Below, one piece after another: positions 607 through 63,551 of a stretch of 64,000 bases of DNA. Location: contig JANJGN010000052.1 in NCBI GenBank assembly GCA_026770705.1, forward strand, positions 372,001-436,000, given 5' to 3'. The stretch comes from Isurus oxyrinchus (taxonomy: Eukaryota). The notes under the pieces are model-generated. The model was not told the origin of the DNA, did no database searches, and worked only from the letters and a program-made list of their open reading frames with translations. The position numbers and the translations under genes are program-made. How positions within the stretch are numbered: position 1 is the stretch's first letter; every line of letters starts with the position of its first letter.

Positions 607-882
607 ATTGTACGTTCAGGTGGGTGATGTTGGAGATGCTGTTACCCATTGGGTTCCTCGCTGTGCAGTAGAAACCTGCATCATTCTCCCGTGTTACAGG
701 AGTGAAGGAGAGAGTGCGGCTACTTGTGTTTAACTGGGTGCTGGTGTTCCCCTCGATCCTGAACCAGGTGTAATGAGATATCGGTGGGACACTTTCACTG
801 GAGCAGGTTAATGTGATATTGCTTCCCTCTCTTATCCCACCTGAGGATCTGCTGATGGACACCATCGTCTCCTGTGGGGGAT
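607..882 (-). CDS. Gene A: C2-set Ig exon (DPPQETMVS...ITLTC...YTWF...FYCTARNPMG...LNVQ); gene continues beyond window start
   Basis: ccag acceptor, gtaagc donor, 276 bp, phase 1/1, canonical Ig C-W-C; CD22/sialoadhesin-like C2. Confidence 0.9.
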
Positions 883-1199
883 CTGGAACAAAGACAGAGA
901 ACAATCAGCAGGTAATCCCCACACCCCACAGCTCTCCGAAATCTCTGCGCTCCTCCAATTCTGAACTCTTGGACATTCTCCCATTCCCATCTCTCCACCA
1001 TTGGCGGCCGTGCCTTAAGCTGCCTGGACCCTAACCTCTGGAATTCCCTCCATCATTTCTCACCTCCTTCGGACAAAATCTGACCCTGAGTCACATTAGG
1101 AGATATTAGGAAAGGTGAGCAAAAGCTCGCTGAAAGCAGGAGGTTTTAACGGTGTGTCTTAATGGTTTTAAGGAGCATCTTAATGGTTGAGAAAGAGTT

Positions 1200-2420
1200 G
1201 GAGATTGTGTATCTCCCGCGCATCCCCCCTTGCAAATTCCTCTTCCTCCCAGAGCAATGTAAGGGTCCCTCCTGTCTTCACTTTTCACCCCACCAGCCTC
1301 CTCATTCAAAGGATCATTCTCCGCCATTTCCGCCAACTCCAGCATGATGCCACCACCAAACACATCTTCCCTTCACCACATCCGCCCCCCCCCACCCCCA
1401 CCCCATTGGCATTCCACAGGGATCATTCCCTCGAGGACACCCTGGTCCACTCCTCCATCACCCCTAGCACCTCAACCCTCTCCGATGACATCTTCCCATG
1501 TATTTACAGAAGGTGCAACACCTGCCCCTTTACTTCCTCCCCCCTCACTGTCCAATGACCCAAACACTCCTTCCAGGTGAAGCAGCGCTTCATGCAGACT
1601 TCCTTCAATTTAATCTACTGCATTCACTGCTCCCAATGTGGTCTCCTCTACATTGGAGACACCAAACACAGACTGGGTGATCGCTCTGATGAACACCTTC
1701 GGTCTGTCCACAAGCATGACCCAGACCTCCCTGTCGCTTGCCATTTTAACACCCCACCCTGCTCTCATGCCCACATGTCCGTCCTTGGCCTGCTGCATTG
1801 TTCCAGTGAAGCCCAACGCAAACTGGAGGAACAGCACCTCATCTTCCGACCTGGCACTTTACAGCCTTCCCGACTGAATATTGAGTTCAACACTTTCAGA
1901 TCATGAACTCTCTCCTCGATCTTCACTGCTTTTTGAACACTTTTTTATATATTCATTTTAATTGTTTTATTTGTTGACTGTTTTCCACTTATTTTTATTA
2001 TTATTATTTGAAATTCATTTCCATTTTATTGATTGTGTTAAACCGCAGATTTTAGTCTATTTTCGATCTTTATTCCCTCCACCGTCCCCTCCCCCTGCCA
2101 CACCCCCACGAGGGCCATCTGTCTCTTTCCAGAGTGCTTACCCTGGTCCGCCCATTATCACACTCTGCTTAATGTCACCATTAGCACCTCCTTTATCCAA
2201 TACCACCACTGTTAACAACCCATTGACCTTTTGTTTATGACATCTTCCACAATCTCTCCATTGCCTCCACCTATCGCTGGTTTTCTATCCAGCTCCACCT
2301 GTCCCATCGCCCCGCCTTAGACAGGATATATTTCACCACATGTCTACTTCCCTTTAGCTCTGAAGAGGAGTCTTACGGACTCCAAACGCTAACCCTGTCT
2401 TTCTCTCCACAGATGCTGCC
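1200..2420 (+). mobile_element. Penelope-like retroelement fragment (GIY-YIG endonuclease region plus 3' terminal repeat)
   Basis: NLIYCIHCSQCGLLYIGDTKHRLGDR..EH motif in ORF 1577-1906; degenerate hammerhead-like motif near 2360. Confidence 0.85.
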
Positions 2421-2422
2421 AG

Positions 2423-2720
2423 ATGCTCAGAATCAGCTGGATGGACAGAAAGACCAATGAGTGGCTTAGATCAAGAGGAGACGTTCAGCAATTAAAAGGG
2501 TTGTTCAGGACAGTTAGAGAGAGAAAGGTCGTCAAGTACGGAGATTGGAAACGAAGACCTGACAGCCTTGTCCTCACAACCATTGAAGGAGAAACTGAGA
2601 GCAAAAACAGAAAGGGAGAGGAAAAATTGGGTGTGTGGATAATGTGGACTGAGCGAGGATTGAAGAAAACTGGATTAAAAACAACACGATCCCAATGGCT
2701 CCACGGAGACCACGGAGACA
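2423..2720 (+). mobile_element. RTE-like LINE 3' fragment
   Basis: MLRISWMDRKTNEWL...LTTIEG resembles the C-terminus of RTE-clade ORFs. Confidence 0.55.
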
Positions 2721-2750
2721 ACAAACAAACAAATGTATCTCCACGCTCAC

Positions 2751-3032
2751 ATTCCACAGTGATGGTTATGAACCCCTCCACTGCTCCATGTTCATTCTCT
2801 GCCACACACAGATAGTCTCCAGTGTCCCTGGATGTAACGTGAGGAATCACCAACCACAGCTCATTGTTGGAACTTGTTCTGTTCATTGGGACATTAAGAT
2901 GTCGCCACGTCAGGTTAGAAGCTGGGAAGCTCTCGACAGAGCAGATTATCACTGCAGAATTCCCCTCAATTATGTTGATCGATGAAGCGTTAATCATATC
3001 AAGAGAAGTAATTGATGGGTTCCGTGGTGCAT
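2751..3032 (-). CDS. Gene A: C2-set Ig exon (DAPRNPSITS...IICSVESFPASNLTW...YLCVAENEHG...ITVE)
   Basis: ttag acceptor, gtgagc donor, 282 bp, phase 1/1, open frame. Confidence 0.9.
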
Positions 3033-3927: not shown

Positions 3928-4209
3928 ATTCCACAGTGATGGTTATGAATCCCTCCACTGCTCCATGTTCATTCTCTGCCACACACTGATAGTCTCCAGT
4001 GTCCCTGGATGTAACGTGAGGAATCACCAACCACAGCTCATTGTTGGAACTTGTTCTGTTCATTGGGACATTAAGATGTTGCCACGTCAGGTTAGAAGCT
4101 GGGAAGCTCTCGACAGAGCAGATTATCTCTGCAGAATTCCCCTCAATTATATTGATCCATGAAGCGTTAATCATATCAAGAGAAGTAATTGAGAGATTCT
4201 GTGGTGCAT
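3928..4209 (-). CDS. Gene A: C2-set Ig exon, near-identical duplicate of 2751-3032
   Basis: ttag acceptor, gtgagt donor, 282 bp, phase 1/1. Confidence 0.9.
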
Positions 4210-4729: not shown

Positions 4730-5403
4730 AATGAATTATATTTAATCGATGGAGCACTGAGGGGTAAATCTACAATTCTCTGTTAAGGATTTTGCTCATC
4801 CAATTCAGGGTCTTGTTGATCTGGAGTTTACCTTCCTTCAGCACAGAATCGGAGCTGACACCGAGACTCCAGTGCAGCACTGANNNNNNNNNNNNNNNNN
4901 NNNNNNNNNNNNNNNNNNNNNNNNNNNNNNNNNNNNNNNNNNNNNNNNNNNNNNNNNNNNNNNNNNNNNNNNNNNNNNNNNNNNNNNNNNNNNNNNNNNN
5001 NNNNNNNNNNNNNNNNNNNNNNNNNNNNNNNNNNNNNNNNNNNNNNNNNNNNNNNNNNNNNNNNNNNNNNNNNNNNNNNNNNNNNNNNNNNNNNNNNNNN
5101 NNNNNNNNNNNNNNNNNNNNNNNNNNNNNNNNNNNNNNNNNNNNNNNNNNNNNNNNNNNNNNNNNNNNNNNNNNNNNTGTGCATGNNNNNNNNNNNNNNN
5201 NNNNNNNNNNNNNNNNNNNNNNNNNNNNNNNNNNNNNNNNNNNNNNNNNNNNNNNNNNNNNNNNNNNNNNNNNNNNNNNNNNNNNNNNNNNNNNNNNNNN
5301 NNNNNNNNNNNNNNNNNNNNNNNNNNNNNNNNNNNNNNNNNNNNNNNCATGTGTGTGTGTGTCTGTTGGTGCGTGTGTGGTCTGTGTAACCTGTAAACCT
5401 AAC

Positions 5404-6569: not shown

Positions 6570-8620
6570 CTGGCGTAAAAATAAATCAGGAAATGGTGCT
6601 CAACCAGGGCTTACAAAAGAAATTAGGGATAGTATTAGATCCAGAGAGGAGACATAAAATTGCCAGGGGAAGCAGCAATGCCGAGGATTGGGAGCAGTTT
6701 AGAATTCAGCAAAAGTGGACAAAAAGATTGATCAAGAAGGGGAAAATGGAACATGGGAGTAAACTTGCAGGGAACGTAAAAACCGACTGTAAAAGCTTCT
6801 ATAAATATGTGAAGAGAGGAAGATTAGCGGTGACCGATGTAGGTTCCTTGCAGTCAGAAATGGGGGAAATTCTAATGAGAAACAAAGAAATGGCAGAAGA
6901 ACTGAACATATATTTTGGTTCTGTCTTCACAAAAGAGGACACAAATAATTTCCCAGGAATGTTAGGGAACCAAGTGTCTAGTGAGAGGGAGGAATTGAAG
7001 ATAATCAGGATTAGTTTTAAAAAATGGAGCTGGAGAAATTAATGGGTTAAAGGTTGAACAGTCCCCAGGGCCTGAAAATCTACATCCCAGAGACTAACGG
7101 AAGTGACCCTGGAAATATTGGAAGCACTGGTGGTCATCCTCCAAAATTCTATAGGCTCTGGAGCAGTTCCTATAGATTGGAGGGTGGCAATTGTAACCCC
7201 ACTATTTAAAATAGAAGGGAGAGAAAAATCAGAGAATTACAGATCAGTTAGTCTAACATGGGGAAAACGCTAGAGCCTATTATATAAGGTGTGCTAACGG
7301 AACGCTTGGAAAGCATTAATGGGATTAGACAAAGTCAGCATGGGTTAATGAAAGGAAAACCATGCTTAACTAATCTACTGGAGATTTTGAGGATGTAACT
7401 TGTGGAATAGATAAGGGATAACCAGTGGATGTGGTGTTTTTAGATTTCAAGAAGGCTTTTGATAAGGTCCCACATAAGAGGCTAGTGGGCAACATTAAAG
7501 CCCATGGGATTGGGGGTAATTTACTGGCATGGATTGAGAATTGGTCGACAGACAGGAAACAGAGGGTCAGAATAAATTAGTCTTTATCTGAGTGGCAGGC
7601 GGTGACTAGTGGTGTACCACAGCGATCCGTGCTTGGGACCTAACTATTCACGATATATTTAAAGGACTTGGGTGAAGGAGCCAAGTGCAATATTTCCAGG
7701 TTTTCTGATGACACAACGCTGGGTAAGGGTGTGAGCTGTGAGGAGGATGCAAAGAGGCTTCAAGGCGATTTAGACAAGTTGTGTGTGTGGGCAAACACAT
7801 GGCAGATGATGTGGATGAATGTGACATTGTAGGCTTTGGTGTGAAAAACAGAAAGGCAGAGTATTATTTAAATGGTGATATAATGGGAAATGTGGATGTA
7901 TAAAGGGATCTGGGTGTCCTTGTGCACTAGCCAATGAAAGTAAACAGGCAGGTGCAGCAAGTAATTCGGAAGGCAAATGGTATGTTGTCCTTCATTGCAA
8001 GAGGATTTGTGTTCAGGAGTAGGGATGTCTCACTGCAGTTATACAAGGTCTTGGTGAGACTGCACATGGGGTACTACGTGCCGTTTTGGTCTCCCTCCCT
8101 AAAAAAGGATAGACTTGCCGTCGAGAGAGTGCAGAGAAGGTTCTCTAGGCTGATACCAGGGGCGGCAGGACTGTCGTATGAGGAGAATTGCTACGACTGG
8201 GTCTGTATTCACTAGAGTTTAGAAGAATGAGAGGAGACCTGAATAAACGTAAGAAATTCTAACAGAGATAGACAGACTGGATGGAGGGAGGATGCATCCC
8301 CTGGTTGGGGAGTCTAAAACCAAGGGCGACAATCTCAGGATACAGGGCAGGCCATTTTGGACGGAGATAGGGAAACATTTCTTCACTCAGAGGGTGGTCA
8401 ATCTGTGGAATTCTCCATCACAGAGGCTGTGGAGGCCGGGTCACTGAGTGTATTCAAGAAAGAAACTGATAAATATTTTGATATTAGGGTCATCAAAGGG
8501 TACGGAGAGAAAGCAGGAATAAGGCTTTGAGATAGAGGGTCAGCCTTGATCATATTGAATGGCGGAGAAGGCTTGAAGGGCTGAATGTCCTAATCCTGCT
8601 CCTAGTTTCTATGTACCTAG
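6570..8620 (+). mobile_element. Degenerate CR1 LINE (ORF2 RT plus 3' UTR)
   Basis: KSFYKYVK, LYKVLVRLHMGY..FWSP motifs; CR1-type tail ending cctgctcctagtttctatgt. Confidence 0.9.
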
Positions 8621-10096: not shown

Positions 10097-10465
10097 CAGA
10101 AACGTGAAGCTGGGTTACAGGGTAATAGTTATGGCCCGGACCATTGTCAAATTCTATTCTGAAAATATAAGTTCCTGCATCTTCCCGTCTGATGTTGTTT
10201 ATAATCAGGGAACAGTCGCCATCTTTCAGGTCTCCAGACAGCCGGGTCCGATGGTGGAACCGTGGTAACTCGTGACTGTGATCCTTGGAGTGAAAGGCAA
10301 TGGGAGCCCAGGGAATCTGTTTCTCATTATTAAACCAGACTCCACCTCGCGGTTGGTTTTCCGGACACAATGGATAACTGTAATGACATGGAATCTGTAC
10401 ACACGAACCTTCCTGTGCTGTCACCTCTCGTGGACTGTCACCTTTCCACTCTTGTGAGGGTTTAT
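10097..10465 (-). CDS. Gene A: Siglec-type V-set exon V2, with the essential Arg (DAGTYIFRIE)
   Basis: ccag acceptor, gtaagt donor, 369 bp; EGSCVQIPC and GDCSL (B-E disulfide pattern), no F-strand Cys. Confidence 0.93.
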
Positions 10466-11431: not shown

Positions 11432-12385
11432 CTGGGGCTGGAGGAGGTTACACAGATAGGGAGGTTTGTGGGGGCTGGAGGAGGTAACAGAGATAGGGAG
11501 GGCTGTAGATACTGGAGGACATTACGCAGATAGGGAGGGTGGTAGGACCTGGAGGAGGTTGCAGAGATAGGGAGGGCTATAGGGATTTGAGGAGTTTATG
11601 GAGATGGGGAACGTGTAGGGACTGGAGGAGGCTGCAAGGGCAGAGAGGGTTTTAGGGGCAGGAGGAGTTTACAGGGATAGGAAGAGTTGTAGGGGCTGGA
11701 CGGATTGCAGAGGTAGGGAGGGTTGGAAAGGCTGGTGGAGGTTTCAGAGGTAGGGAAGGCTGCAGGGACTGGAGGAGTTTACAGAGATGGGGGAGTTTTT
11801 GGGGCAGGATGGGGTTACAGAGATAGGGAGGGTTGTAGGGGCAGGACGAGGTTACATAGATATGGAGTGTGGCTGGGGCTGAGGGAGGCTACAGAGATAG
11901 GGAGGGTTATAATGGCTGGAGGAGTTACAGAGATGAAGGAAACTCTTAGGGACTGGAGGAGGTTACAGAGATAGGGAGGGTTGTAGTGGGCTGGAGGAGG
12001 TTACAGAAATATGAAGGGTTGTAAGAGATGGACCAGCTTACAGAGATAGGGAGAGGTATTCGGTCTGGAGGAGTTTGCAGAGATAGTGGAGGTTGTTAGG
12101 ACTGGAGGAGGCTACAAATATCGCGAGGGTTATCGGGGCTTGAGGAGGTTAAAGAGATAGGGAGGGGTGTTGGGTCCGGAGGAGTTTGCAGTGATAGGAA
12201 TGGTTTTCGGGATTGGAAGAGAGTACTGAGATAGGAGGGTTGTAGGGACTGGAGGAGTCTCCTGAGATAGGGAGGGTTGTAGGGACTGGAGGAGGCTCCT
12301 GAGATAGGGAGGGTTGTAGGGACTGGAGGAGGCTCCTGAGATAGAGAGGGTTGTAGGGACTGGAGGAGGCTCCTGCGATAGGGAA
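11432..12385. repeat. 37-bp G-rich minisatellite (ggctggaggaggttacagagatagggagggttgtagg)
   Basis: About 25 degenerate tandem units; reverse complement of the array at 1-260. Confidence 0.9.
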
Positions 12386-12459: not shown

Positions 12460-13410
12460 GACTTTGCTTGACCAGGAGCCAGTCTCGGTCATCGAGCAGA
12501 GCGGGTGATAAGGGAACGGGACTTGGTGTGAGTAAGGACGTGGTCAGCAGTTTTGGATGGCCTCAAGTTTATGGAGTGTAGAGCATGTGTTGGAACAGTC
12601 GAGTCTGGAGGTAATGAAGGCGTGGATGAGGGTTTCAGCAGCAGATGAGCTGAGACAGGGTGAAGTCGTACGACGTTATGGAGGTGGAAATAGACAGTGT
12701 TAGTGAGGGCGCAGATATGAGGCCGGAAGCTCATCTCAGGATCAAATGGGACAACAAAGCTGTGAACAGATTGGCTTCAATCTCAGAGAGCTGCCAGGGA
12801 GAGGAATGGAGTTGGTAGCGAGGGAACAGAGTTTGGATCGAGGAATGAAGACAATGGCTTCAGTCTTTCCAATATTTAATTGGAGGGAATTTCTGCCCAT
12901 CCAGTACTGGATGTCGGATAAGCAGCCTGATAATTTAGCAGCAGTGGAGGAGTCGAGAGAGGTGGTGGTGAGGTAGAGCTGGGGATCCTCAGTGGACAGG
13001 TGAAAACTAATACTGTTCAGATGATGCTGCAAAGCCATTGCAAGTGATTCTCTGGCTACGATGAGATGGATAAGAATGAAGCCAGGGGAGAGCAGTCCCA
13101 CCCAGCTGGACGACAGTGGAGAGGGGTTGGAGGAGGATGGTGTGGTCGAGCGTGTCAAAGGCTGCAGACAGATCGAGAAGGACGAGGAGGGAAAGTTGAC
13201 CTTTGTCACAGTCACACAGGATGCCATTTGTGACCTTGATAAGAGCTGTTTCAGCACAGTGGCTGGGGTGGGAACCTGATTGGAGGGATTCAAACATGGA
13301 GTTCCGGGAAAGATGGAACCGGATTCGGGAGATGGAAACACGTTCAAGGACTTTGGAGGGGAAAGAGAGGCTGGAGATGGGACGGGGGTTTACACGGACA
13401 GTGTGAGGGG
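12460..13410 (-). mobile_element. L2-like LINE RT fragment
   Basis: RPISSLSFPSKVLER, LVLLDLSAAFDTLDH, LQLNIGKTE. Confidence 0.88.
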
Positions 13411-13661: not shown

Positions 13662-14039
13662 CAGAAACGTGAAGCTGGGTTTCAGGGGAAACGTTATGTC
13701 TCGGACCATTGCCAAATTTTATCGTGAAAAAATAAGATCCTGCATCTTCCCGTCTGATGTTGTTTATAATCAGGGAACAGTCGCCATCTTTCAGGTCTCC
13801 AGACAGCCGGGTCCGATGGTGGAACTGTGATAACTCGCGACTGTGACCCTTGGAGTGAAAGGCTATAGACCATTTAGACCATTTGTTCTGTATGTATCTT
13901 CTCATTTTCCAGATTCCGACCTGTGGTTTCTTTACCAAATCTGATGGATAACTGTAATGACATGGAATCTGTACACACGAACCTTCCTGCGCTGTCACCT
14001 CTCGTGGAGTGTCACCTTTCCACTCTTGTGACAATCCAA
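13662..14039 (-). CDS. Gene A: Siglec-type V-set exon V1, essential Arg replaced by Thr (DAGSYFFTIK)
   Basis: ccag acceptor, gtaagt donor, 378 bp, phase 1/1, open; starts VGLS/QEW, completing the signal peptide. Confidence 0.92.
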
Positions 14040-19323: not shown

Positions 19324-19363
19324 CTTGGAGAAGTGACAGGAGGAAGTAGGATTTCCCGATCAT
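19324..19363 (-). CDS. Gene A: leader exon coding part (MIGKSYFLLSLLQ); exon acceptor at 19405
   Basis: ATG at 19363, 40 bp, phase-1 donor gtaata, joins V1 in frame; strong tttctctttcag acceptor. Confidence 0.85.
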
Positions 19364-19813: not shown

Positions 19814-19898
19814 CCAGGACCTGTCCGACTGCTCGTCTGGGGAGGAACTGCCCACATGCTCTGCTTGGGCTGAATGACCTCTTCCTGTGCTGCCCCCT
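19814..19898 (-). other. 85-bp exon-like module, candidate 5' UTR exon of gene A (copy 1 of 4)
   Basis: cag acceptor and gtaagt donor; paralogs at 26555-26639, 27203-27287, 33136-33220. Confidence 0.55.
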
Positions 19899-22509: not shown

Positions 22510-22649
22510 TCAAACAGTCTGTCGACTTCCTTTCACTGTTTGTCTCTCCCAGACACAGACTCCAGTGATAGTGATAACCACAGCCACAAGGAATATCACA
22601 GCTCGTATTCCCAGGATCAGGATCACGTGCAGAATCTCTCCTCCACTGT
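22510..22649 (-). CDS. Gene B: TM exon with intramembrane Arg and short tail (SGGEILHVILILGIRAVIFLVAVVITITGVCVWERQTVKGSRQTV*)
   Basis: ttctctag acceptor, phase 1, 140 bp to TGA at 22510-22512; hand-translated (ORF track shows another frame). Confidence 0.85.
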
Positions 22650-24312: not shown

Positions 24313-24465
24313 ATTCCACAGTAATGGTTATGAACCCCTCCACTGCTCCATGTTCATTCTCTGCCACACACTGATAGTCTCCAGTGTCCCTGGATGTAAC
24401 GTGAGGAATCAGCAACCACAGCTCATTGTTGGAACTTCTTCTGTTCATTTGGACATTCAGATGTC
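24313..24465 (-). pseudogene. Gene B: 5'-truncated C2 exon (...MNRRSSNNELWLLIPHVTSRDTGDYQCVAENEHG...ITVE)
   Basis: Only the 3' half is present, donor intact; flanks match those of 36065-36346. Confidence 0.85.
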
Positions 24466-24988: not shown

Positions 24989-25362
24989 CAGAAACGTGAA
25001 GCTGGGTTACAGGATAGTAGCTGTAACTATTCCTGCTGTCAAACTCTATTCTGAAAAAATAAGGTCCTGCATCTTCCCGTCTGATGTTGTTTATAATCAG
25101 GGAACAGTCACCATCTTTCAGGTCTCCAGACAGCCGGGTACGATGGCGGAATCTTTGATCCCTGTGATTGTGACCCTCGGAGTGAAAGGCTATAGACCAT
25201 TTAGGCTGTGGGTTCCCATCTATTCCTTTCAACCAGATTCTGCACGTGATCTCCCTACGAAATTTGATAAGTAACTGTAATGACATGGAATCTGTACACA
25301 TGAACCTTCCTGTGCTGTCACCTCTCGTGGAGTGTCACCTTTCCACTCTTGTGACAGTCCAA
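24989..25362 (-). pseudogene. Gene B: V-set pseudo-exon (Arg present: DAGPYFFRIE)
   Basis: 374 bp, frameshift near 25240-25270 splitting it over two ORFs; acceptor AG>CG relative to V1. Confidence 0.88.
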
Positions 25363-26126: not shown

Positions 26127-26675
26127 CCACTTCTCACTCTCAAGCTGTGAAAGAGAAAGGAGTTAATGAGACCTCACCTCTTGTCCGACAGCTCTCGAGA
26201 GATCAGAACTGCTTTTAGACAATGTCTTCACAGACTAATTTGATTCTCTGTGGGATGATAGGTGCTCAGCAGAGAGTTACAAGGCTTTAAGAAAAACAAA
26301 CAATGAAGGATTTGCATTTCTATAGCACCTTTCACCACCTCAGGGCATCCCAAAGCTCATGTCTCTGCACTTCCCTCATCCCTTGAACTAGAAAGATGTT
26401 CGGTACAACAGACTTGAGCCTCACACCCAGATCTCAATAATCAGTAGAAATCTTTCAAAGGCATCAGTCATTGGAATCTGTCTTTATAAAGTCACAACAT
26501 CAACAAAGGACGGTGTTGGTGGTGGAAGTGAATTCCAATCGTTCCGTTACTTACCCAGGACCTGTCCGACTGCTCGCCTGGGGAGGAACTGCCCACACGC
26601 TCTGCTTGGGCTGAATGACCTCTTCCTGTGCTGCTCCCTCTGTGTATTTAATGAGAAAGGGTTGATGTGTGTCTG

Positions 26676-32519: not shown

Positions 32520-32624
32520 CTGATTCCTCAAAGCCCAACCACGCTCACAGTTTTCATAAACAGGACCTCGATATTCATCAACACGGTGGTTCGATTTGAT
32601 TCCTGCTTTCCCCTCACCTCTCTT
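32520..32624 (-). CDS. Gene C: candidate cytoplasmic exon ((K)RGEGKAGIKSNHRVDEYRGPVYENCERGWALRNQ)
   Basis: Pyrimidine tract ends tttcGG with in-frame AAG 3 nt downstream; cag|gtgagt phase-0 donor fits the terminal exon. Confidence 0.6.
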
Positions 32625-33940: not shown

Positions 33941-34037
33941 TTTCTCACACACTTGAAGATGAAGAATCCACTCAGTCCAACACTCAAACAGATTCCAGCT
34001 CCAAGCAATCCTGCTTTCCATTCATTGGAATCTCGCC
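33941..34037 (-). CDS. Gene C: TM exon (RRDSNEWKAGLLGAGICLSVGLSGFFIFKCVRK), no charged residue in the hydrophobic span
   Basis: ttttacag acceptor, gtaagt donor, 97 bp, phase 1 to 2; hand-translated. Confidence 0.88.
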
Positions 34038-35303: not shown

Positions 35304-35585
35304 GTTCCACAGTGATGGTTATGAATCCCTCCACTGCTCCATGTTCATTCTCTGCCACACACTGATAGTCTCCAGTGTCCCTGGATGTAACGTGAGGAAT
35401 CACCAACCACAGCTCATTGTTGGAACTTGTTCTGTTCATTGGGACATTAAGATGTCGCCACGTCAGGTTAGAAGCTGGGAAGCTCTCGACAGAGCAGATT
35501 ATCACTGTAGAATTCCCCTCAATTATATTGATCGATGAAGCGTTAATCATATCAAGAGAAGTAATTGAGAGGTTCTGTGGAGCAT
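35304..35585 (-). CDS. Gene C: C2-set exon (domain 5)
   Basis: tttag acceptor, gtgagt donor, 282 bp, open. Confidence 0.9.
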
Positions 35586-36064: not shown

Positions 36065-36346
36065 GTTCCACAGTGATGGTTATGAACCCCTCCACTGCTC
36101 CATGTTCATTCTCTGCCACACACTGATAGTCTCCAGTGTCCCTGGATGTAACGTGAGGAATCACCAACCACAGCTCATTGTTGGAACTTGTTCTGTTCAT
36201 TGGGACATTAAGATGTCGCCACGTCAGGTTAGAAGTTGGGAAGCTCTCGACTGAGCAGATTATCACTGCAGAATACCCCTCAATTATATTGATCGATGAA
36301 ACGTTAATCATATCAAGAGAATTAATTGAGAGATTCTGTGGTGTGT
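36065..36346 (-). CDS. Gene C: C2-set exon (domain 4)
   Basis: ttcag acceptor, gtgagt donor, 282 bp, open. Confidence 0.9.
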
Positions 36347-39650: not shown

Positions 39651-39739
39651 AGATACAGTTCAGAGGAAAACCACCCATTAATATATCCCGTGTCAGTCAC
39701 ACCGTAGCAATAGAGAATTCCGATGGAATAGGGGCCTTT

Positions 39740-41021: not shown

Positions 41022-41279
41022 ATTCAGTGGGAATTCTAATGGGCAGAGACTGGGAACTGCCCAGGATACTTGTTGCTTCACAGTAGTAGGAGATTTCCTC
41101 ATCGAATCCATAAGGAACTGTAATAGTTTGACCAGCGAGCGCGAGATTCGTCATCTTTCCTTGGGAGATCTTAAACCAGGTGAAATTGTGGACTGCTGGA
41201 TTCCCGTCACTGGAACAACTTAGAGAAATCACCTTTCCTTTTTCCAGTGTCAGCCTGACAGACGTGTTGTGAGGAGAAT
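41022..41279 (-). CDS. Gene C: C2-set exon, domain 3 (DSPHNTSV...LSCSSDGNPAVHNFTWF...YYCEATSILG)
   Basis: aag acceptor, gtgagt donor, 258 bp, phase 1/1. Confidence 0.88.
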
Positions 41280-44162: not shown

Positions 44163-44519
44163 CAAGAACCTGGAGTTGGACTGGTTGTGTAAAAGTGTGA
44201 TCTGTGTAGCCCTCCACATCCACATAAAAGTAATACACATCACTATCTTCAGCTCTGAGACTGTCAATCCTCACCGAACAATTCTTCCCTTCCAAGTCGC
44301 CGATTATTTTAGCACGTCCCACGAATGTGGCCATCGCATAGTTGGGATCTTTGGTGTATGTGATGGTATATTTCCATCTATACCAATATTTATACCAAGC
44401 TCCGTGCAGTGCTGTGTAAGAGTGGGAAGGAAAGTCAAAGCTACACGGAATAACCACACAAGAGCTGCTGATGGCCCTCCGAGACAGCGCCTTCATAGAC
44501 CATCCCTCTGACGTCACTC
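44163..44519 (-). CDS. Gene C: Siglec-type V-set exon, Arg position occupied by Tyr (DSDVYYFYVD)
   Basis: tttcag acceptor, gtaagt donor, 357 bp; SSCVVIPC and KNCSV Siglec cysteines. Confidence 0.92.
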
Positions 44520-45339: not shown

Positions 45340-45385
45340 CTTGCAGCAAGCTGATGAAGATCAGTATCAGACCGACCTCTCCCAT
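45340..45385 (-). CDS. Gene C: leader exon coding part (MGEVGLILIFISLLQ); acceptor at 45399
   Basis: 46 bp, phase-1 donor gtacaa; same SLLQ-G ending as gene A leader. Confidence 0.88.
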
Positions 45386-53000: not shown

Positions 53001-54309
53001 TCTTTGCATCTCCAAAACATTTGATGCATTTCAAGATATAAATCAACAGGAGATGGGGGTATTGTATCCTCCAGAGGGGGTTTTGAATGGCTGATGATTA
53101 TCCGCTTGGTGAGCAGTTCCCACTGTTTTGATAGAACCACAGCTGATCAAAGTCCAGCACTTTGCATTTTAATGCCTTCCTTTTAAGAGTGTCCCTGTTT
53201 GAAGTGCACCCTGACACACCCCAGGCGTGACCTTCCATGCAACTGGTCTGCAGTGCAATTCATTTGAACCTTTCCAGAGAAGTGATCAACTTCACAGTAT
53301 CAGCAATCAGATGACTTGTGTCAGCCATTTTTGATCTGTGTACAATCTTGTATTTCTTTGAAAAACAGGTCACTTTTAGACAGTACAATATGTCTTTGGT
53401 CTGTTAGTTCAGTTGTAGGAAGCTCTTAATCGCAGTTTGCTGTCATTGGGATATTGTCTTTGTGTTTGTATTTGTGCACGTGTGTGAGTGAATGTGTGTG
53501 TGAATGTGTGAATATGAGAATGTAAGTGTGTTTGTGTCTGTCTGTAAGCGTGTGAGCGTGTGTATGTGTGTTTGTGTATGTGTGTGTGTGTGTCTATGTG
53601 TGTATGTGAGTGTNNNNNNNNNNNNNNNNNNNNNNNNNNNNNNNNNNNNNNNNNNNNNNNNNNNNNNNNNNNNNNNNNNNNNNNNNNNNNNNNNNNNNNN
53701 NNNNNNNNNNNNNNNNNNNNNNNNNNNNNNNNNNNNNNNNNNNNNNNNNNNNNNNNNNNNNNNNNNNNNNNNNNNNNNNNNNNNNNNNNNNNNNNNNNNN
53801 NNNNNNNNNNNNNNNNNNNNNNNNNNNNNNNNNNNNNNNNNNNNNNNNNNNNNNNNNNNNNNNNNNNNNNNNNNNNNNNNNNNNNNNNNNNNNNNNNNNN
53901 NNNNNNNNNNNNNNNNNNNNNNNNNNNNNNNNNNNNNNNAACTTCCCTGAGTGTGGCCGGTGTGTTTAACATTTAAGCCACACAGACAGGATGTGGTTAA
54001 AAGGTGAAACCACAAGGAGTGAGTGTGTATTCCAGTGACTGTCTCTCTGTGGGTTTCCTGTGGGTTTCTGTGAACTGCCTGTGGTTTTAAAAAAAATCTT
54101 CCAACCCCACATGCACGGCATCAAATAAGGATTTGGAAGATGCAGCTCAGAGAGTAACTAGTCCCTCCTCCACTCTTCATCCTCCTGCTCCTCTGCGTCC
54201 CTCCTCGTCTCTCTCCTCATACTCCCACGCCTCCCCCTCCTCAACCCCCCACCTCCCTCCACCTCATCCTCATCTTTCTCCTCCTCCCCTCCTCCTCCTG
54301 TCGAGTCTG

Positions 54310-55400
54310 ATGCACAGGAACAGGAAGAGGCCATTCAGCCCCTCTAGCCTCCTTCTCTATTTGACTACATCACAGCTGATCTGTATCTTAACCCCATCCA
54401 CCCGCCTCGGTTCCGTGACCCTTAACCCCCGACCCAACAACAATCTCCCAATCTCAGTTTTGAAATTTACAATTGACCCCTCCCAGTCTCGACAGCTTTT
54501 TCTGGGGGAGAGAGTTCCAGATTTCCACCCCCGCTTTGTGTGAAGAAGTGCTTCCTGACATCACCCCCTGAACGGCCTGGCTCCAATGTTAATGTTCTGC
54601 CCCCTTGTTCTGGAGCNNNNNNNNNNNNNNNNNNNNNNNNNNNNNNNNNNNNNNNNNNNNNNNNNNNNNNNNNNNNNNNNNNNNNNNNNNNNNNNNNNNN
54701 NNNNNNNNNNNNNNNNNNNNNNNNNNNNNNNNNNNNNNNNNNNNNNNNNNNNNNNNNNNNNNNNNNNNNNNNNNNNNNNNNNNNNNNNNNNNNNNNNNNN
54801 NNNNNNNNNNNNNNNNNNNNNNNNNNNNNNNNNNNNNNNNNNNNNNNNNNNNNNNNNNNNNNNNNNNNNNNNNNNNNNNNNNNNNNNNNNNNNNNNNNNN
54901 NNNNNNNNNNNNNNNNNNNNNNNNNNNNNNNNNNNNNNNNNNNNNNNNNNNNNNNNNNNNNNNNNNNNNNNNNNNNNNNNNNNNNNNNNNNNNNNNNNNN
55001 NNNNNNNNNNNNNNNNNNNNNNNNNNNNNNNNNNNNNNNNNNNNNNNNNNNNNNNNNNNNNNNNNNNNNNNNNNNNNNNNNNNNNNNNNNNNNNNNNNNN
55101 NNNNNNNNNNNNNNNNNNNNNNNNNNNNNNNNNNNNNNNNNNNCCACCATCCGGGGAAATAGTTTCTCTCTATCGACCCCATCGAATCCTTTATTCATCT
55201 TAAACCCCTCGATTAGATCACCCCTTAATCTTCGAGACTCGAGGGAACACAAGCCTGGTCTGTGCAACCTGTCCTCGGGATTTAACCCTTTCAGCCCCGG
55301 GATCGTTCTGGTGACTCTGGGCTGCAGCCCCTCCGAGGACAATATCCCCTCCCTGAGGTGTGGGGTCCAGGACTGACCCCAGTGACTACAGGTGGGGTCT
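54310..55400 (-). mobile_element. CR1-derived element with an internal N gap
   Basis: SLESRRLRGDLIEGFK; paralog of 39.8-40.4 kb. Confidence 0.85.
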
Positions 55401-56439: not shown

Positions 56440-57500
56440 TTTTTTATATTCATTTATGGGATATGGACGGAACTGGCGAGGCCAGAATTATTGCCCATCC
56501 CTAATAGCCCTTGAGAATATGGTAATGAGCTGCCTTCTTGAACTGTTGCAGTCTATGTGGTGTAGGTACACCCACAATGCTGTTAGGGAGGGTGTTCCAG
56601 GATTAGGACCCAGTGACTGTGAAGGAACGGCCGATATATTTCCAAGTCAGGATAGTGAGTGACTTGGAGGGTAACTTCCAGGTGGTGGTGTTACCATGTA
56701 TCTGCTGCCCTGTAATTCGAGATGGTAGTGGTCGTGTGTTTGAAGGTGCTGCCTAAGGAGTTTTGGTGAGTTCCTGCAGTGCACCTTGTAGCTGGTACAC
56801 ACTGCTGCTACTGTGTGTCGGTTGTGCAGAGAGTGAATGTTTGTGGATGGGGAGCCGAACTAGTGGGGCTGCTTTGTCCTGAGTGGTGTTGAGTTTATTG
56901 AATCTTGTTGGAGCTGCACTCATCCAGGCAAGTGGAGAGTCTTCCATCACACTCCTGACCTGTGCCTTGAAGACGGTGGACAGGTTTTGGGGAGTCTGGA
57001 GTGAGTTACTCACTGCATGATTCCCAGCCTCTGACCTGCTCTTGTAGCCACAGTATTTTTATGGCTAGTCCAGTACAATTTCTGGTCAATGGTAACCACC
57101 AGGATGTTGATAGTGGGGCATTCAGCAGTGGTAATGTCATTGAACATCAAGGAGCGATGGTTAGATTCTCTCTTATTGGAGATGGTCATTGCCTGACACT
57201 TGTCAGCCCAAGCCTGGATATTGTCCAGGTCTTGCTGCATTTGGACAAGGACTGCTTCAGTATCTGAGGAGACGTGAATGGTGCTGAACATTGTGCAATC
57301 ATCAGTGAACATCCACACTTCTGTCCTTATGATGGAAGGAAGGTCATTGATGAAGCAGCTGAAGGTGGTTGGGTCTTGGACACTACCCTGAGTAACTCCT
57401 GCAGTGATGTCCTGGAACTGAGATGATTGACCTCCAACAACCACAACTATCTTCCTTTGTGCTGGGTATGGCTCCAACCAGTGGAGAGTTTTCCCTCTGT
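56440..57500 (-). mobile_element. CR1/L2-clade LINE RT plus 3' region
   Basis: GVTQGSV..P..FSCFINDL...MFTDDC. Confidence 0.88.
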
Positions 57501-58740
57501 TATGATGTGGTAGATGATGTGTGCCGGGGGACCAAATCCACAAGGGAAACTTGGTCACACTATCACAACAGTTTTGCGATTTGTATTTATTATGAGATGT
57601 GTGCACTGAATTCAGGAGTAATGTGTCAACCAAGACATTTAGAGATCTTAAAAATTAAATTTTAATATTTATTTAAGATTTAAAGCACACACATAAGGAT
57701 ACGGTTACTACTATAACAAATCCTAAACTTCCTAATTAACCTTGAAGATGGTGGACAGGCATTGGGAAGTCTGGAAGTGAGCAGTAAAACTCCTTTTAGG
57801 CAATAAACCAAAATAGATTTTAGATTTAAAAACAGAACCAGCAAGTTAACACAGAACACACTTGAGAGTGGATTTCCAAATGGCTTTCTCGAACGACAGT
57901 CGCTGAACATAACAGACCTATGGACAAATGCCTGGAGGCTTCTTCAAGGCTGATTCACACACTCTTGTTAGATTTTACATGATCCCCAACATAGCCTTTC
58001 ATTCTCCTTTGTTGATGTTTCTCTCTCTTTGATATGTAAATTTCATTGTTCCATATGTCTTTGGAATGATACATTTCCCATAATATAAAAACTTTCATGT
58101 TGCCAATGTTGTCAATAACCTTTGGGAAAAATAAACACACTCCTTTGCCTTGCATATCGGCCTCGTTGTAAACAGACCAACAGCCCTTTGAAATCCAAAC
58201 AATCCCTTCACTTACCTAAAAATTAAAATTCTCTTTCTCACCTCACATGCAAAGAAAGCCTCCATGTTCACTCATTAGCATTTCAAGTACATTTCTACAC
58301 CTAGCTTCTTTTGATAATCTCAAACTTGCAGTCTACCTGACTCCAGGTGTAATTAAACCACACAGACAGACCCATCTACACTCACACCCATAAACCTAGT
58401 TTACAACAAACCAGGAAAATATTAAGCAAATTATTATACTTTCGTACCACCCCTGATTCCCATTGACTCCAGTTTTACTCGGGATCCTAGATGCCACACT
58501 CGGTCAAATGCAGCCTTGATGTCAAAGGCAGTCACTCTCACCTCACCTTGTATTAACAGATGTTAAATTATACATAATTCATAAGCTTCTCACAATCTTT
58601 TACAGCATGGAAAAAGGTGCAGCATTCAGAAAGCTCACTCAGAACCAATAAAAAAAAGTTGAGCAACATCATATTTCTGTTCATTACTATTTGGCCATGT
58701 TGGCTGCACACACCCCACAGCCCCGCTCCCTGTTTCACAC

Positions 58741-58989
58741 TCAGTTTTTCTGGAACCTGATCTGTGCGTATTCCGTGTCCTCGCTCCTGTGCACAGTCCT
58801 GTCACCGCCGGGCAGCTTTGGAAAGTTGATGTTGGCGTAGAGAAGCTTGGCGGGATTGTCGGGGTTCCCATGTCCAACATCGCCTCCCACTGGACCTTCA
58901 GAGAGATCCCGGGGAGCTGGGGTCTCCCCCTCACTAGTTGTGTCTCTGGTTGTGTTCCGGGGCTCAGTAATCAGCACGTTCTGTTTACC
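58741..58989 (-). CDS. Gene D: distal terminal cytoplasmic exon with ITIM LLYANI and ITSM-like TEYAQI
   Basis: ctctgtag acceptor, phase 0, 249 bp to TGA; motif pair as in CD33-related Siglec tails. Confidence 0.88.
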   Translation of the reverse strand, partial: GKQNVLITEPRNTTRDTTSEGETPAPRDLSEGPVGGDVGHGNPDNPAKLLYANINFPKLPGGDRTVHRSEDTEYAQIRFQKN

Positions 58990-59480
58990 CTACAGAGAAA
59001 TGGAAACAGAAGATATCCTCACATCAATTACTGGTACTGATAGGGTTAAATTATTGTGCAGCCTCATTAGTGTCAGTCGTATCTCAGTGGGTTTAACCCT
59101 TTTTTTCACTCTCTTTCTCTGTCTCTCTCGCTTTCTCTCTCTCTTTATAATTTAATCTCTATCACACTCCAACAGTGCAGCACTCCCTCAATACTGACCC
59201 TCTGACAGTGCAGCACTCCCTCAGTGCTGACCCTCCGACAATACAGCGCTCCCTCAGTACTGACCCTCTGTCAGTGCAGCACTCCCTCAGTACTGACCCT
59301 CCAACAGTGCAGCACTCCCTCAGTACTGACCCTCCAACAGTGCAGCACTCCCTCGGTAATGGCTCTGGTGAGTGATGGCTTGGAATCTGCACACAGGTGC
59401 CTGGTGTGAGGCTCAATAACATGAACCTTGTAATCAGAGAGAGGATGAGAGAGAGGGAGAGAGGAGGGACAGAGACAGAG

Positions 59481-60549: not shown

Positions 60550-60631
60550 CTGGTGCTTCACACAGAGTGAACTGGGGGTCAATGCAATGTCTCTGGTCCC
60601 TGAAACTCTCTCCTCCATCGCTGTCTTTCTC
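60550..60631 (-). CDS. Gene D: distal juxtamembrane cytoplasmic exon (RKTAMEERVSGTRDIALTPSSLCVKHQ)
   Basis: ttgcag acceptor, cag|gtacag donor, 82 bp, phase 2 to 0, fits terminal exon. Confidence 0.8.
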
Positions 60632-61820
60632 CTGCAATAACACAATATGACACTGTGGTTATCATATAGCAGAGAGTCAGTGCAGCACAGACATAGAGCA
60701 CACTGTAACCTTACACCAATGACTGGACTGTCTCTTTAAATCACTTCTGCACAAAGCACAGAATCTAGAATCTTGACACCATCCAGGACAAAGCAGCCCG
60801 ATTGATCTACACCCCATCCCCCACATTAAACATTCACTCCCTCCACCATGAACACACAGTGGCAGCAGTGTGTGTACCATCTACAAGATGCACTGCAGCA
60901 ACTCAGCAAGGCTCCTTCAACAGCACCTTCCAAACCCACGAACTCTACCATCTAGAAGGACAAGGGCAGCAGACACATGGGAACACCACCACCTGGAAGT
61001 TCCCCTCCAAGTCACTCACCATCCTGACTTGGAAATATATCACCGTTCCTTCATTGTCGCTGGGTCAAAATCCTGGAACTCCCTCTCTAACAGCACTGTG
61101 GGTGTACCTACACCACATGGACCGCAGCGGGTCAAGAAGGCAGCTCACCACCACCTTCTCAAGGGCAATTAGGGATGGGCATTAATGCTGACATCACCAG
61201 TGACAGACACATTCGATGAAAGAATTAAAAATCTCACAGCTCAATCTATTTATTGTGACCCTGCTGCACACACTCCCTGTCGAAGGAGCCTTTGTGGTTC
61301 TATTGTTAATCGAAGCAGATCAGAGTTACTACAACCACTTGCATTTATATAGCACCTTCAATGTAGCAAAATGTCCTAAGGCTCATCTGGGGATTGTTAG
61401 TGACATCTTCACCTGACTCTGAGGCACATGAGGAGATATTAGGGACAGGAGACCAACAGCTGAGTCAACAAAGTCAGTTATTAACGGGCATCTTAAAGGA
61501 GGAGCTGGAGATAGGGAATGAGAGACAGACACAGAAAGAAAGACAGAGACAGGGAGAGAGAGAGAGAGAGAGAGGGAGAGAGCGAGAGAGAGAGGGAGAG
61601 AGAGAGAGAGAGAGAGAAAGACAGTGAATCTCTATCCCCAATGGCTCAGCATCCAGTCCTCTCTGGAGAAGCATTTCATTCCAAACCACACCAACCGCAG
61701 CCCAATTCCATCCCTTCCTCCCTCTTTCCCCCTCTCCCCCAGTGGGTGTTTCCTGTTCCCAGGAATCTCAATCACTACCCCCACCCCCATACCTCCTCAC
61801 TCACTCTCCCCATTTCTCAT

Positions 61821-62069
61821 TCAGTTATGCTCGAACCTGATCTGTGCGTATTCCGTCTCCACTTCCCTGTGGACAGACCCATCACCACTGGACATCCTCA
61901 AGACTTGGGGATTGGCGTAGAGAAACTCTTCAGGTTTGTCAGGGTTCCCATGTCCAACATCGCCTCCCACTGCATCTTCAGAGAGACCCCAGGGAGCTGG
62001 GGTCTCCCCCTCGCCAGTTGCGTCTCTCTTTGTGTTCTGGGGCTCAGTAATCAGCACGTTCTGTTTACC
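61821..62069 (-). CDS. Gene D: proximal terminal cytoplasmic exon, ITIM altered to FLYANP, TEYAQI retained
   Basis: Intact acceptor, 249 bp, open to TGA. Confidence 0.85.
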   Translation of the reverse strand, partial: GKQNVLITEPQNTKRDATGEGETPAPWGLSEDAVGGDVGHGNPDKPEEFLYANPQVLRMSSGDGSVHREVETEYAQIRFEHN

Positions 62070-62579
62070 CTACAGAGAAATCGAAACAGAAGTTATCCTC
62101 ACATCATTTACTGGCACTGATAGGGTTAAATTATTGTGCAGCCTTGTTAATGTCAGTCGTGTCTCAGTTGGTTTAACCCTCTCTCTCATGTCATATGAAA
62201 GATACCACCTATGGCAGTGCAACGCTCCCTCAGGACTGACCCTCCGACAGTGCAGCACTCCCTCAGTACTGACCCTCCGACAGTGCAGCGCTCCCTCATT
62301 ACTGACCCTCCGACAGTGCAGCGCTCCCTCAGTACTGACACTCCGACAGTGCAGCTCGCCCTCAGTACTGACCCTCCGACAGTGCAACACTCCCTCAGTA
62401 CTGACCCTCTGTCAGTCTTGCACTCCCTCGGTAATGGTTCTGGTGAGTGACAGTTGGATTCTGCACTCAAGTGTCTGGTGTGAAGCTCATTAACATGCAC
62501 CTTGTAATCAGAGAGAGGATGAGAGAGAGAGAAAGAGAGAGAGAGAGAAAGAAAGGGAGGTTGGGATAGAGAGAGAGAC

Positions 62580-63333
62580 TGTCATGATGCGATTAATAAA
62601 TATCATGTTATTGGAAATTATTTTTATTCACATCGGGGTTTAGTCTGTGGGTGTGTCTGTGTGTGTTTTAATTGGATTAAAGCCAGCCAGTCTGGGTATT
62701 TGATGTATAGTAGTTTTGAGATGTAAACTGAGGCATAAAAATTTGTATTTTTAAACAGAGCATTCAAAACCTGAGAGTGAAATCTTAAACCAATCAATAT
62801 TTATTTTATTGATAAAATTGATACTATGACAGAGGATTTATTGTTTGAAGGGATGGAGTTCAAAGGTCCTGATGATACAATTAGAATTTACATTCAAAGA
62901 GAAGAGCTGGGTATAACTTGAGCAGTTTTGTGTGTGCAGAGCAGAGGCTTGTAACATCAAAGCAGCTGTAAGCCTACACCTGTCTGCAAAGGAACCAAAG
63001 TGAAAGGAACCTCATTTGGAATTTGTGAGGTGAAAATGCTTTGCCTGGGTGTCTGCTTAAATTCTATGGGTTATCTTAGAGGAGATTAGTTTGGGAATTT
63101 GTTAAAAAGTTATGATAATACTAGTTTGTAGCCATGTGCATATGTTTAACTTGTGTTAATTAATAAATGGCTCATGTAGTTTGATATAAAACCATCTCGA
63201 GAACTGGTGGTCTTATTCCTGAATTTAGAGCTGCATCTCAAACATTCCACTGGGAAATATAGGTTATGACAGTTGTTTAAAGTTTCCCTCTGGGATTTTA
63301 AACAACAGTCTTTACCAGTTGCTGTGTCATAAC
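62580..63333 (+). mobile_element. Probable solo LTR (TG...CA ends)
   Basis: tgtcatg...tcataaca termini with internal AATAAA. Confidence 0.6.
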
Positions 63334-63469
63334 AGAGAGACAGCATGATACTGAACCATTGCTGACTCCACAGGTACAAATCAGTGGGTAACTGGGCTGG
63401 GAATCTGGGACATGTGTTGTCTACACACTGAGATTGAAGCTTTGGAGTGAGTGTAAACAGCTCCTGTAC

Positions 63470-63551
63470 CTGGTGCTTCACAGAGAGTGAACTGGGGCTC
63501 AATGCAATGTCACTGGTCCCTGAAACTCTCTCCTCCATCGCTGTCTTTCTC
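63470..63551 (-). CDS. Gene D: proximal juxtamembrane cytoplasmic exon (RKTAMEERVSGTSDIALSPSSLSVKHQ)
   Basis: 82 bp, phase 2 to 0, intact splice sites. Confidence 0.8.

Follow-up and report, generated by a model that had tools for sequence, protein, structure and literature searches.

A cluster of Siglec-like receptor exons with three kinds of signalling end in the shark Isurus oxyrinchus, probably part of a large tandem family

A window of 64,000 nucleotides of the genome of the shark Isurus oxyrinchus (assembly GCA_026770705.1, contig JANJGN010000052.1, positions 372,001 to 436,000 of the forward strand) was analysed for genes of Siglec-like receptors of the immunoglobulin superfamily (IgSF); all positions given here count from the first letter of this window. 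A preliminary description, made from the letters alone, had claimed four tandem gene units on the minus strand, with Siglec hallmarks and three different signalling ends. All immunoglobulin (Ig) exons of the window are read from the minus strand, a splice-site check giving them AG/GT borders in phase 1, and the limits given in that description (607 and 63551) are exact exon borders, its other coordinates also falling on true borders. The number of units was stated too generously in one respect, as only gene C is complete: the window holds the 3' end of gene D, the complete gene C, a degenerate gene B and the 5' part of gene A. Exons were analysed singly, the searches and the tree being based on single exons and not on spliced models of joined exons, and related proteins (designated by P numbers) were mapped back on the window by tblastn, which located the membrane and tail exons. 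The following features were annotated (a slash marks an exon border; percentages are identities).

Gene D, 3' end
63470..63551, minus strand: cytoplasmic exon 1 (RKTAMEERVSGTSDIALSPSSLSVKHQ); tblastn to P0003, P0013 and P0165, borders TTGCAG/ and CAG/GTACAG
61821..62069, minus strand: tail exon of cassette 1, with FLYANPQV, TEYAQI and a stop; P0013 and P0241 have the same YxNPQV type
60550..60631, minus strand: second copy of cytoplasmic exon 1; tblastn, borders
58741..58989, minus strand: tail exon of cassette 2, with LLYANINF, an immunoreceptor tyrosine-based inhibitory motif (ITIM), TEYAQI, similar to an immunoreceptor tyrosine-based switch motif (ITSM), and a stop; 82% to the tail of Cetorhinus P0003

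Gene C, complete
45340..45385, minus strand: coding part of the leader exon (MGEVGLILIFISLLQ); tblastn to residues 1-19 of P0249, 89%
44163..44519, minus strand: V-set exon (C_V), F strand YYFYVD; best PDB match MAG, E 6e-15; 88% to P0249
41788..42066, minus strand: D2 (C2-set) exon with the extra Cys; 93-97% to P0249; splice sites
41022..41279, minus strand: third Ig exon, skipped by P0249 but contained in P0385 (a great white isoform) and in P0135 (skate)
36065..36346, minus strand: C2 exon b; Pfam, splice sites, tblastn
35304..35585, minus strand: C2 exon c; Pfam, splice sites, tblastn
33941..34037, minus strand: membrane exon, span without charged residue; 97-100% to P0249 and P0255
33136..33220, minus strand: cytoplasmic exon (GSSTSRGHSAQAERVGSSSPGEQSDRYW); tblastn, borders
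32520..32621, minus strand: cytoplasmic exon 2 (DEYRGP, VYENC), optional in great white models; 92% to residues 478-514 of P0249, missing from P0385
30643..30759, minus strand: last exon, with DLYANCEF, C-terminal SVYGNL and a stop; 87% to P0249

Gene B, degenerate
26555..26639, minus strand: upstream exon, a copy of the gene C cytoplasmic exon; a contig end at 26145 has its last 26 bases exactly; junction also in P0255
26066..26144, minus strand: leader exon, one base shorter than that of gene A; tblastn, borders
24989..25362, minus strand: V-set exon (B_V), 374 nucleotides, frameshifted and read in two frames, YFFRIEF kept
24313..24463, minus strand: remnant of a C2 exon, 3' half only, without acceptor; sequence comparison, splice-site check
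22510..22649, minus strand: membrane exon, Arg in the span (ILGIRAVIF), 12-residue tail without Tyr, stop; 89-93% to P0171, P0168 and P0193

Gene A, 5' part
19814..19898, minus strand: upstream exon, another copy of the cytoplasmic type; start coordinate by analogy with gene B
19324..19363, minus strand: coding part of the leader (MIGKSYFLLSLLQ); tblastn, borders
13662..14039, minus strand: distal V-set exon (A_V1), F strand YFFTIKF, Thr for Arg; Pfam, splice sites, tree
10097..10465, minus strand: second V-set exon (A_V2), F strand YIFRIEF, Arg kept; PDB; 92-94% to P0171, P0168 and P0164
8987..9274, minus strand: D2 (C2-set) exon (A_D2) with the extra Cys; 98% to the activating P0171 and to the inhibitory P0165
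3928..4209, minus strand: C2 exon a; splice sites, tblastn
2751..3032, minus strand: C2 exon b; Pfam, splice sites, tblastn
607..882, minus strand: C2 exon c, of a different type; Pfam, splice sites, tblastn

The V exons match the Pfam V-set model (E 4e-13 to 5e-7), and both V exons of gene A (at 13.6k and 10k) pass the cut-off of the Pfam model of the CD22-like first Ig domain. In comparisons with PDB, the best 18 matches of A_V2 (the exon at 10k) are all Siglecs, with E-values from 4.8e-14 to 3.4e-8 (Siglec-5, Siglec-7, CD33, Siglec-8, sialoadhesin, MAG, Siglec-10 and Siglec-15), pIgR being found only afterwards; the best 17 matches of C_V (the exon at 44k), headed by MAG, are likewise all Siglecs. 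The D2 exon alone is less telling, with nectin-4 at 1e-6 slightly ahead of MAG (2e-5) or CD33, and it is the one exon that would favour derivation of the domains from a non-Siglec family of the IgSF (for example nectin, pIgR, CEACAM or JAML-like), an outcome by which the preliminary description would have been refuted. We regard that origin as scarcely credible: the Siglec matches of A_V2 surpass pIgR by about four-fold to nearly three million-fold in E-value, and the contiguous V-D2 region of P0016, a model of the great white shark Carcharodon carcharias, matches CD33 at 2e-23 and MAG at 8.5e-20, then Siglec-5, -10 and -8, with nectin-4 as first non-Siglec at 1.4e-11. The best PDB matches of the V exons and of this V-D2 region are thus Siglecs, and the Cys pattern and the F-strand Arg are also of the Siglec type.

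This Cys pattern (CVxIPC, an E-strand Cys and no F-strand Cys) is found in all four V exons of the window, the Cys of CVxIPC and that of the E strand being the predicted partners of an intrasheet B-E disulfide. The motifs are SCVQIPC, GDCSLII and YIFRIEF in A_V2 and SCVVIPC, KNCSVRI and YYFYVD in C_V, while A_V1 and B_V have the same Cys pattern. The extra Cys is present in both D2 exons: VSCTFNTTCNG of A_D2 aligns with VSCMVPDNCPE of the MAG D2 domain, and the gene C exon reads IICKCLYTCPD, extra Cys included. The Cys of the PC pair in CVxIPC and the extra Cys of D2 are predicted to form an interdomain disulfide. Siglec-like identity, as first proposed, is therefore supported by PDB ranking, Pfam and Cys pattern, and the hallmarks hold for every V and D2 exon present; they cannot be extended to all four units, as the ectodomain of gene D is outside the window and gene B has no D2.

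At the F-strand position of the Arg that contacts sialic acid, the window has Arg in A_V2 and B_V, Thr in A_V1 and Tyr in C_V. The YIFRIE motif of A_V2 aligns with YFFRVE of Siglec-5, its Arg falling on the ligand-binding position of Siglec-5 and Siglec-7, and sialic-acid binding by the shark receptors is described here as putative. It is unlikely, in our estimation, that these proteins are Siglecs by descent which bind no sialic acid and have other ligands, for example proteins or pathogen structures. Such a reading would draw on the Tyr that replaces the essential Arg in 18/18 relatives of gene C in which the motif was located, on the Thr of A_V1 and the Lys of the first V domain of great white P0165, and on the status of sialic-acid binding as a candidate function predicted from sequence. 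It has to contend with the Arg kept, in a YFFRIEF context, by the main-family V domain that adjoins D2, both in the window and in the shark models read, which aligns with the ligand Arg of Siglec-5 and -7. Mammals, moreover, also have a multi-V Siglec, Siglec-12, in which one V domain has lost the Arg.

Three kinds of signalling end were recognized. Gene D is represented by cytoplasmic exons only, its membrane exon lying beyond the end of the window; a weak match of P0015 upstream of 63551 was considered for this exon and rejected, as it contains stops and the true membrane-exon type occurs only at 34037-33941. The tail exon of cassette 2 has the layout LLYANINF-x17-TEYAQI, to be compared with LQYASLSF-x16-20-TEYSEI of mammalian CD33-related Siglecs in a survey of the fetched proteins, so that the tail layout of that group (a proximal ITIM and a distal TEYxxI/V) is present in it. 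The ITIM and ITSM tails ascribed to gene D in the preliminary description were recovered in part: TEYAQI ends both tail exons and cassette 2 has an ITIM, while the first motif of cassette 1 has Pro at +3 and is not a canonical ITIM. Cassette 1 contains an internal donor (AG/GTTCGA) after YAQIR, in the correct phase, and great white P0165 strings both cassettes in series by means of a donor right after YAQIR; the two cassettes may therefore be used serially as well as alternatively. Tails of the FLYANPQV type and of the LLYANINF type both recur in models of the great white and basking sharks. The inhibitory module is made up of three exons, one for a membrane span without charge, a short cytoplasmic one and one for the tail (LxYANINF as ITIM, TEYAQI as ITSM-like motif), the cytoplasmic and tail pair being duplicated at the end of gene D and apparently used, going by the great white model, in series or alternatively. 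Once phosphorylated, the tail tyrosines would recruit phosphatases of the SHP-1/2 type and damp signalling in the cells presumed to express these receptors.

The second kind of end is that of gene C, for which the proposed YxN-rich tail with a terminal ITIM-like motif was read as such (YENC, YANC and terminal SVYGNL). Tails of this kind, with two YxN tyrosines near the C-terminus, also occur in several shark and ray relatives, and the module of gene C would be made of these YxN tyrosines and the C-terminal SVYGNL.

The third kind is the membrane exon of gene B (22649-22510), which encodes ILHVILILGIRAVIFLVAVVITITGVCVW followed by ERQTVKGSRQTV and a stop. As announced, it combines an Arg in the span with a short tail, here of 12 residues, and it is intact. 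This Arg-anchor last exon is shared by 8 gene models with an invariant ILGIRA, 7 of them from Carcharodon, S. canicula and S. torazame and the eighth being P0023. The activating module would be this single last exon, with the Arg buried in the span and a Tyr-less tail of 12 residues, and a receptor so anchored would pair with a putative adaptor of the DAP12 or FcR-gamma kind bearing an immunoreceptor tyrosine-based activation motif. A literature search on DAP12 in sharks gave only unrelated papers.

Relatives of these exons were sought in large protein collections. When 1.8 billion representative proteins were scanned in full with A_V2, 221 of them matched at E <=1e-10, and the best of these have two to four V-like stretches; they are named "sialic acid-binding Ig-like lectin 8/10/12/13" and come from Scyliorhinus, Mustelus, Cetorhinus, Stegostoma, Hypanus and others. 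A second search gave 116 proteins from more than 20 species; every one with a named source is from an elasmobranch, and their names are without exception of the Siglec-x, CD33-like or MAG-like kind. Closest to the window are RefSeq models of Carcharodon carcharias and of the basking shark Cetorhinus maximus, with 88-98% identity per exon, in agreement with the shark origin that had been surmised before the source of the DNA was given and indicative of a shark near the lamniforms. Gene C, with its leader and tail, has P0249/P0385 as counterparts (88-97% per exon). Searches with P0016 and P0249 residues 1-230 returned elasmobranch proteins only, with no true MAG, CD22, Siglec-1 or Siglec-15 among them, and a marmot Siglec query returned mammalian CD33-related Siglecs only (the human entry was left out).

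In the great white shark, the V-D2 region of the activating model P0171 is 90% identical to that of the inhibitory P0165 and 94% identical to that of P0164, and A_V2 and A_D2 of the window match activating and inhibitory great white models alike (92-98%). A maximum-likelihood tree, unrooted, was computed for 60 V domains: 4 exons of the window, 33 elasmobranch, 7 bony-fish and 16 mammalian domains. The main elasmobranch family forms one clade (100/98) that contains A_V1, A_V2 and B_V, the V domains of mammalian CD33-related Siglecs form another (100/99), and the domains of the gene C lineage stand apart on a long branch of their own (100/100). Since the shark and mammalian clades are separate, the expansions were independent, which is the alternative that the preliminary description had called independently expanded. 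Within species, activating and inhibitory forms are interleaved on the tree, which fits a separate elasmobranch expansion with repeated exchange between partners, as far as V sequences can tell. At the level of the family, the paired activating and inhibitory design put forward for this locus is therefore upheld by the eight Arg-anchor models, the 90-94% identity of V-D2 between partners and the interleaving on the V tree.

Taken together, the window is most probably a piece of a large, tandem, elasmobranch-specific family of Siglec-type IgSF receptors, whose ectodomain exons are each time joined to one signalling module out of three. Genes A, B and D would belong to a fast-duplicating main family, with one to three V domains before D2, and gene C would be the local copy of an older lineage. 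Several observations weigh against this reading or narrow it. The V exon of gene B has a one-base frameshift with a stop after the shift, and no D2 exon was found between this exon and the membrane exon. The window has no complete inhibitory gene of the main family, gene D having no ectodomain and gene A no tail here, and the Pro of cassette 1 has been mentioned above. The V tree has no rows for MAG, CD22, sialoadhesin or Siglec-15, so that placement within the Siglecs is not decided by it; as to a CD33-related grouping, the tree, with no such conserved Siglecs, separates shark from mammalian domains, and in PDB CD33 ranks first for the great white V-D2 region with MAG close behind. The window contains no neighbouring gene of a non-Siglec kind that might be compared with the surroundings of the Siglec cluster on mammalian chromosome 19q13. 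Two further points concern the transcripts. Paralogues at least 95% identical map together in the contigs of public sequencing runs, and the D2 end that these contigs join to the Arg exon has 2 of 29 bases different from A_D2, the one D2 of this type that the window contains, which lies downstream of the Arg exon; the activating transcript is therefore that of a paralogue.

These contigs, from the public runs X1, X2, X3 and X10, are the only form in which the runs were used; their library type is a guess ("RNA?"), and neither strand nor expression level nor a transcript of full length can be read from them. Where contigs end exactly at exon borders, they continue with the sequence of other exons, which shows that spliced RNA was sequenced. 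In X1, X2 and X3 the end of a D2-type exon (SERTLVLTV-), of the type of gene A, is joined exactly to the acceptor of the Arg exon; a joint of leader and V exon (26066 to 25362) is found in X2, and V-V (HVS/AEP) and C2-C2 joints are also present in contigs. The transcript check proposed in the preliminary description thus came out half-way: a D2-type end is spliced to the Arg exon in X1-X3, but this D2 is from a paralogue and not from this gene. For the expression of both members of a pair, the D2-Arg exon, C2-C2, V-V and leader-V joints are the evidence at hand, from libraries of uncertain type in which paralogues are not separated. The end of an upstream exon (26556) is joined to 26145 in a contig, with the same junction in great white P0255, from which it follows that the 85-nt copy of the gene C cytoplasmic exon serves as upstream exon of gene B.

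That the window holds no working pair, gene B being a dead relic and the paired design operating only at other copies of the cluster, has in our judgement slightly less than an even chance. The 374-nt V exon with its stop, the missing D2 and the C2 remnant without acceptor speak for a relic, as does the origin of the spliced D2 outside gene B, and the best match of the V exon is only 75-85% identical, compared with 92-98% for exons of gene A. Yet an extra base at both frameshift sites, found in contigs of other runs, restores the reading: an extra A after 26089 occurs in all contigs of X10, most of X3, part of X2 and none of X1, another after 25242 occurs in low-depth contigs of X2 and X3, and with both bases the leader and V exons of gene B read through. 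The leader-V joint and the joint of upstream exon and leader fit the gene B locus exactly, the Arg exon is itself intact, and a V exon spliced directly to the membrane exon stays in phase, exon-skipping models being on record (for example P0003, V-V-membrane). The degeneracy of gene B may be that of a null allele, of a decaying copy, of the sequence of a paralogue or of an assembly slip. In humans, activating Siglecs commonly have null alleles (PMC6288428), and one at gene B would therefore not be surprising. At the DNA level, the surroundings of B_V and of A_V1 share 86.6% identity.

Copies of the 85-nt cytoplasmic exon of gene C (33136-33220) are found about 410 bp upstream of the leaders of genes A and B, at 19814-19898 and 26555-26639, and there is a further one at 27206-27280. 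A coding exon of the gene C type seems to have been taken over as an upstream exon, unless adjacent genes are connected by read-through transcripts.

Gene C itself is, on the evidence of its sequence, an old and conserved member without the canonical Arg, widespread in sharks, rays and skates and composed of five Ig domains. Its V-D2 region has counterparts in about 14 elasmobranch species, with 59-89% identity, and the 18 relatives with Tyr (YYFYV) in place of the Arg are those, out of 20 listed, in which the motif was located. The membrane-proximal C2 exons of gene C (36065-36346 and 35304-35585) are 92-96% identical, as protein, to those of gene A (3928-4209 and 2751-3032), whereas identity drops to 30-40% when their V and D2 exons are compared; this difference suggests exon exchange or conversion within the cluster, between two old lineages.

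In the window, gene A has the structure V-V-D2 followed by three C2 exons; it continues past the start of the window, its signalling end being outside. A third C2 exon was looked for near the gap at 5.4k, in an open frame that ends with FVTISVEG before a microsatellite, and was rejected, as tblastn gave no C2 exon there.

Seven runs of N interrupt the window (4884-5177, 5186-5347, 48586-48724, 52023-52325, 52492-52809, 53614-53939 and 54617-55143), the last of which is missing from the program-made gap list. The first two lie in the intron between A_D2 (which ends at 8987) and C2 exon a of gene A (which starts at 4209), with a TG microsatellite on one side, and the order of exons on either side of this pair is that of related gene models; the other five lie between the last exon of gene D (58741) and the leader of gene C (45385). 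Microsatellite DNA flanks two of the gaps on one side, the remaining flanks having the look of ordinary or transposon-derived sequence. None of the predicted exons abuts any of the seven gaps, which may break the continuity of the DNA or conceal an exon. These gaps, the many minisatellites and transposon copies and two single-base differences from reads could suggest that the tandem array, the duplicated cassettes and the exon copies are artefacts in the assembly of a repeat-rich, gapped scaffold. We consider this very improbable: the copies in the cluster diverge by 5-18% among themselves and none are identical, the same gene order and the double cassette are found in RefSeq models of other sharks, and the exons stand clear of the gaps.

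Repeats are abundant around the genes. A 33-bp minisatellite (consensus like AGTACTGAGGGAGTGCTGCACTGTCAGAGGGTC) forms at least 9 arrays, oriented either way and situated within introns or between the receptor genes (including 20174-21567, 36478-37367, 43671-44030, 46530-47085, 48963-49683, 59167-59358 and 62215-62433), and yields long spurious open frames (STEGVLHC..., LSTDPPTVQH...). A 24-bp tandem repeat at 30859-32390 (about 64 copies, score 2215) starts about 100 bp beyond the last exon of gene C and takes up the greater part of the intron that separates this exon from cytoplasmic exon 2. Open frames similar to reverse transcriptase, by their look of the long interspersed nuclear element (LINE) type, are found in introns and between genes at 12742-13441, 38270-39700 and 57010-57654 on the minus strand and at 6593-8215 on the plus strand. 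One LINE-type-looking frame sits between the two V exons of gene A, where there is also a 37-bp tandem repeat (with higher orders of 110 and 147 bp) at 11433-12384, whose reverse complement occurs at 1-262. The N run at 54617-55143 (527 letters) is within a transposon-like open frame between genes D and C.

On vertebrate immune cells, Siglecs are the principal sensors of sialic acid as "self", and the existence of paired inhibitory and activating Siglecs is taken as a sign of an arms race against pathogens that imitate the sialic acids of the host. CD33-type tails and Arg-anchored partners in sharks would place this design at the base of the jawed vertebrates, or show two origins of it. A tentative scenario, which we hold as possible but not as the expected outcome, is that the CD33-type design (a tail with ITIM and TEY motif, and a partner with a basic residue in the span) predates the split of cartilaginous and bony vertebrates and did not originate in mammals, that teleosts lost it later and that sharks expanded it into a very large family with modular exchange of exons, the slowly evolving gene C lineage having long since swapped its Arg for Tyr and probably taken another ligand. 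The shark family would in addition offer a second, independent system for the study of gene conversion, of null alleles of activating members and of the exchange of tail modules. The window's own contributions are a complete gene of the Arg-less lineage, a double tail cassette and a degenerate activating copy, and the gain from it is modest.

The family is already annotated in RefSeq as Siglec and is apparently unpublished; as RefSeq uses Siglec names for it in more than 20 species of elasmobranchs, the databases already know it, and no paper on the Siglecs of sharks or other cartilaginous fish turned up in the literature that was searched. Among the elasmobranch RefSeq/Gnomon models, P0171 and P0168 are named "sialic acid-binding Ig-like lectin 12", P0193, P0016 and P0013 "CD33-like" and P0249 and P0385 "myelin-associated glycoprotein-like" (all Carcharodon carcharias), and P0003 "Siglec-12 X3" (Cetorhinus maximus); there are others in Scyliorhinus, Mustelus, Stegostoma, rays and skates. 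Such names come from automatic annotation with the best mammalian hit and should not be taken as a statement of orthology. The models resemble the window in their exons and exon order, the three signalling ends, the V-V architecture and the double tail cassette; the differences are that the models represent different paralogues in different species and that gene B of the window is frameshifted and has no D2.

MAG (Siglec-4) is the best solved match of the gene C V exon, with about 31% identity (also the value for the mouse MAG V domain), and both proteins have five Ig domains. At the position aligned with the conserved ligand Arg of MAG (Arg118), the gene C lineage has Tyr throughout, which speaks against gene C as an orthologue of MAG with that Arg; unlike MAG, gene C has an unrelated tail (YxN tyrosines and a terminal ITIM-like motif), its membrane-proximal C2 exons are 92-96% identical to those of gene A, and it is located within a cluster of immune type.

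The Siglecs known from teleosts are Siglec-1, CD22, MAG and Siglec-15, and fish genomes have been stated, from teleost data, to have no CD33-related inhibitory Siglecs (PMC7226832). They belong to the same superfamily as the shark receptors, and some fish CD22 and MAG proteins bear ITIM tails; the shark family differs from them by its CD33-type tails and its many copies. RefSeq has names of the CD33-like or Siglec-14-like kind for genes of bowfin, gar and bonytongues.

With mammalian CD33-related Siglecs, the shark family shares a V-set domain with the Siglec disulfide pattern, the F-strand Arg in part of its V domains, the extra Cys of D2, and a proximal ITIM followed by a distal TEYxxI at similar spacing. 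With the mammalian paired Siglecs (SIGLEC5/14 and SIGLEC11/16; definition of paired Siglecs in PMC6288428), it shares the basic residue in the span, the short tail and the high similarity of the partner ectodomains. It differs from the mammalian CD33-related Siglecs in forming its own clade, in having up to three tandem V domains and in its tandem-duplicated tail cassettes.

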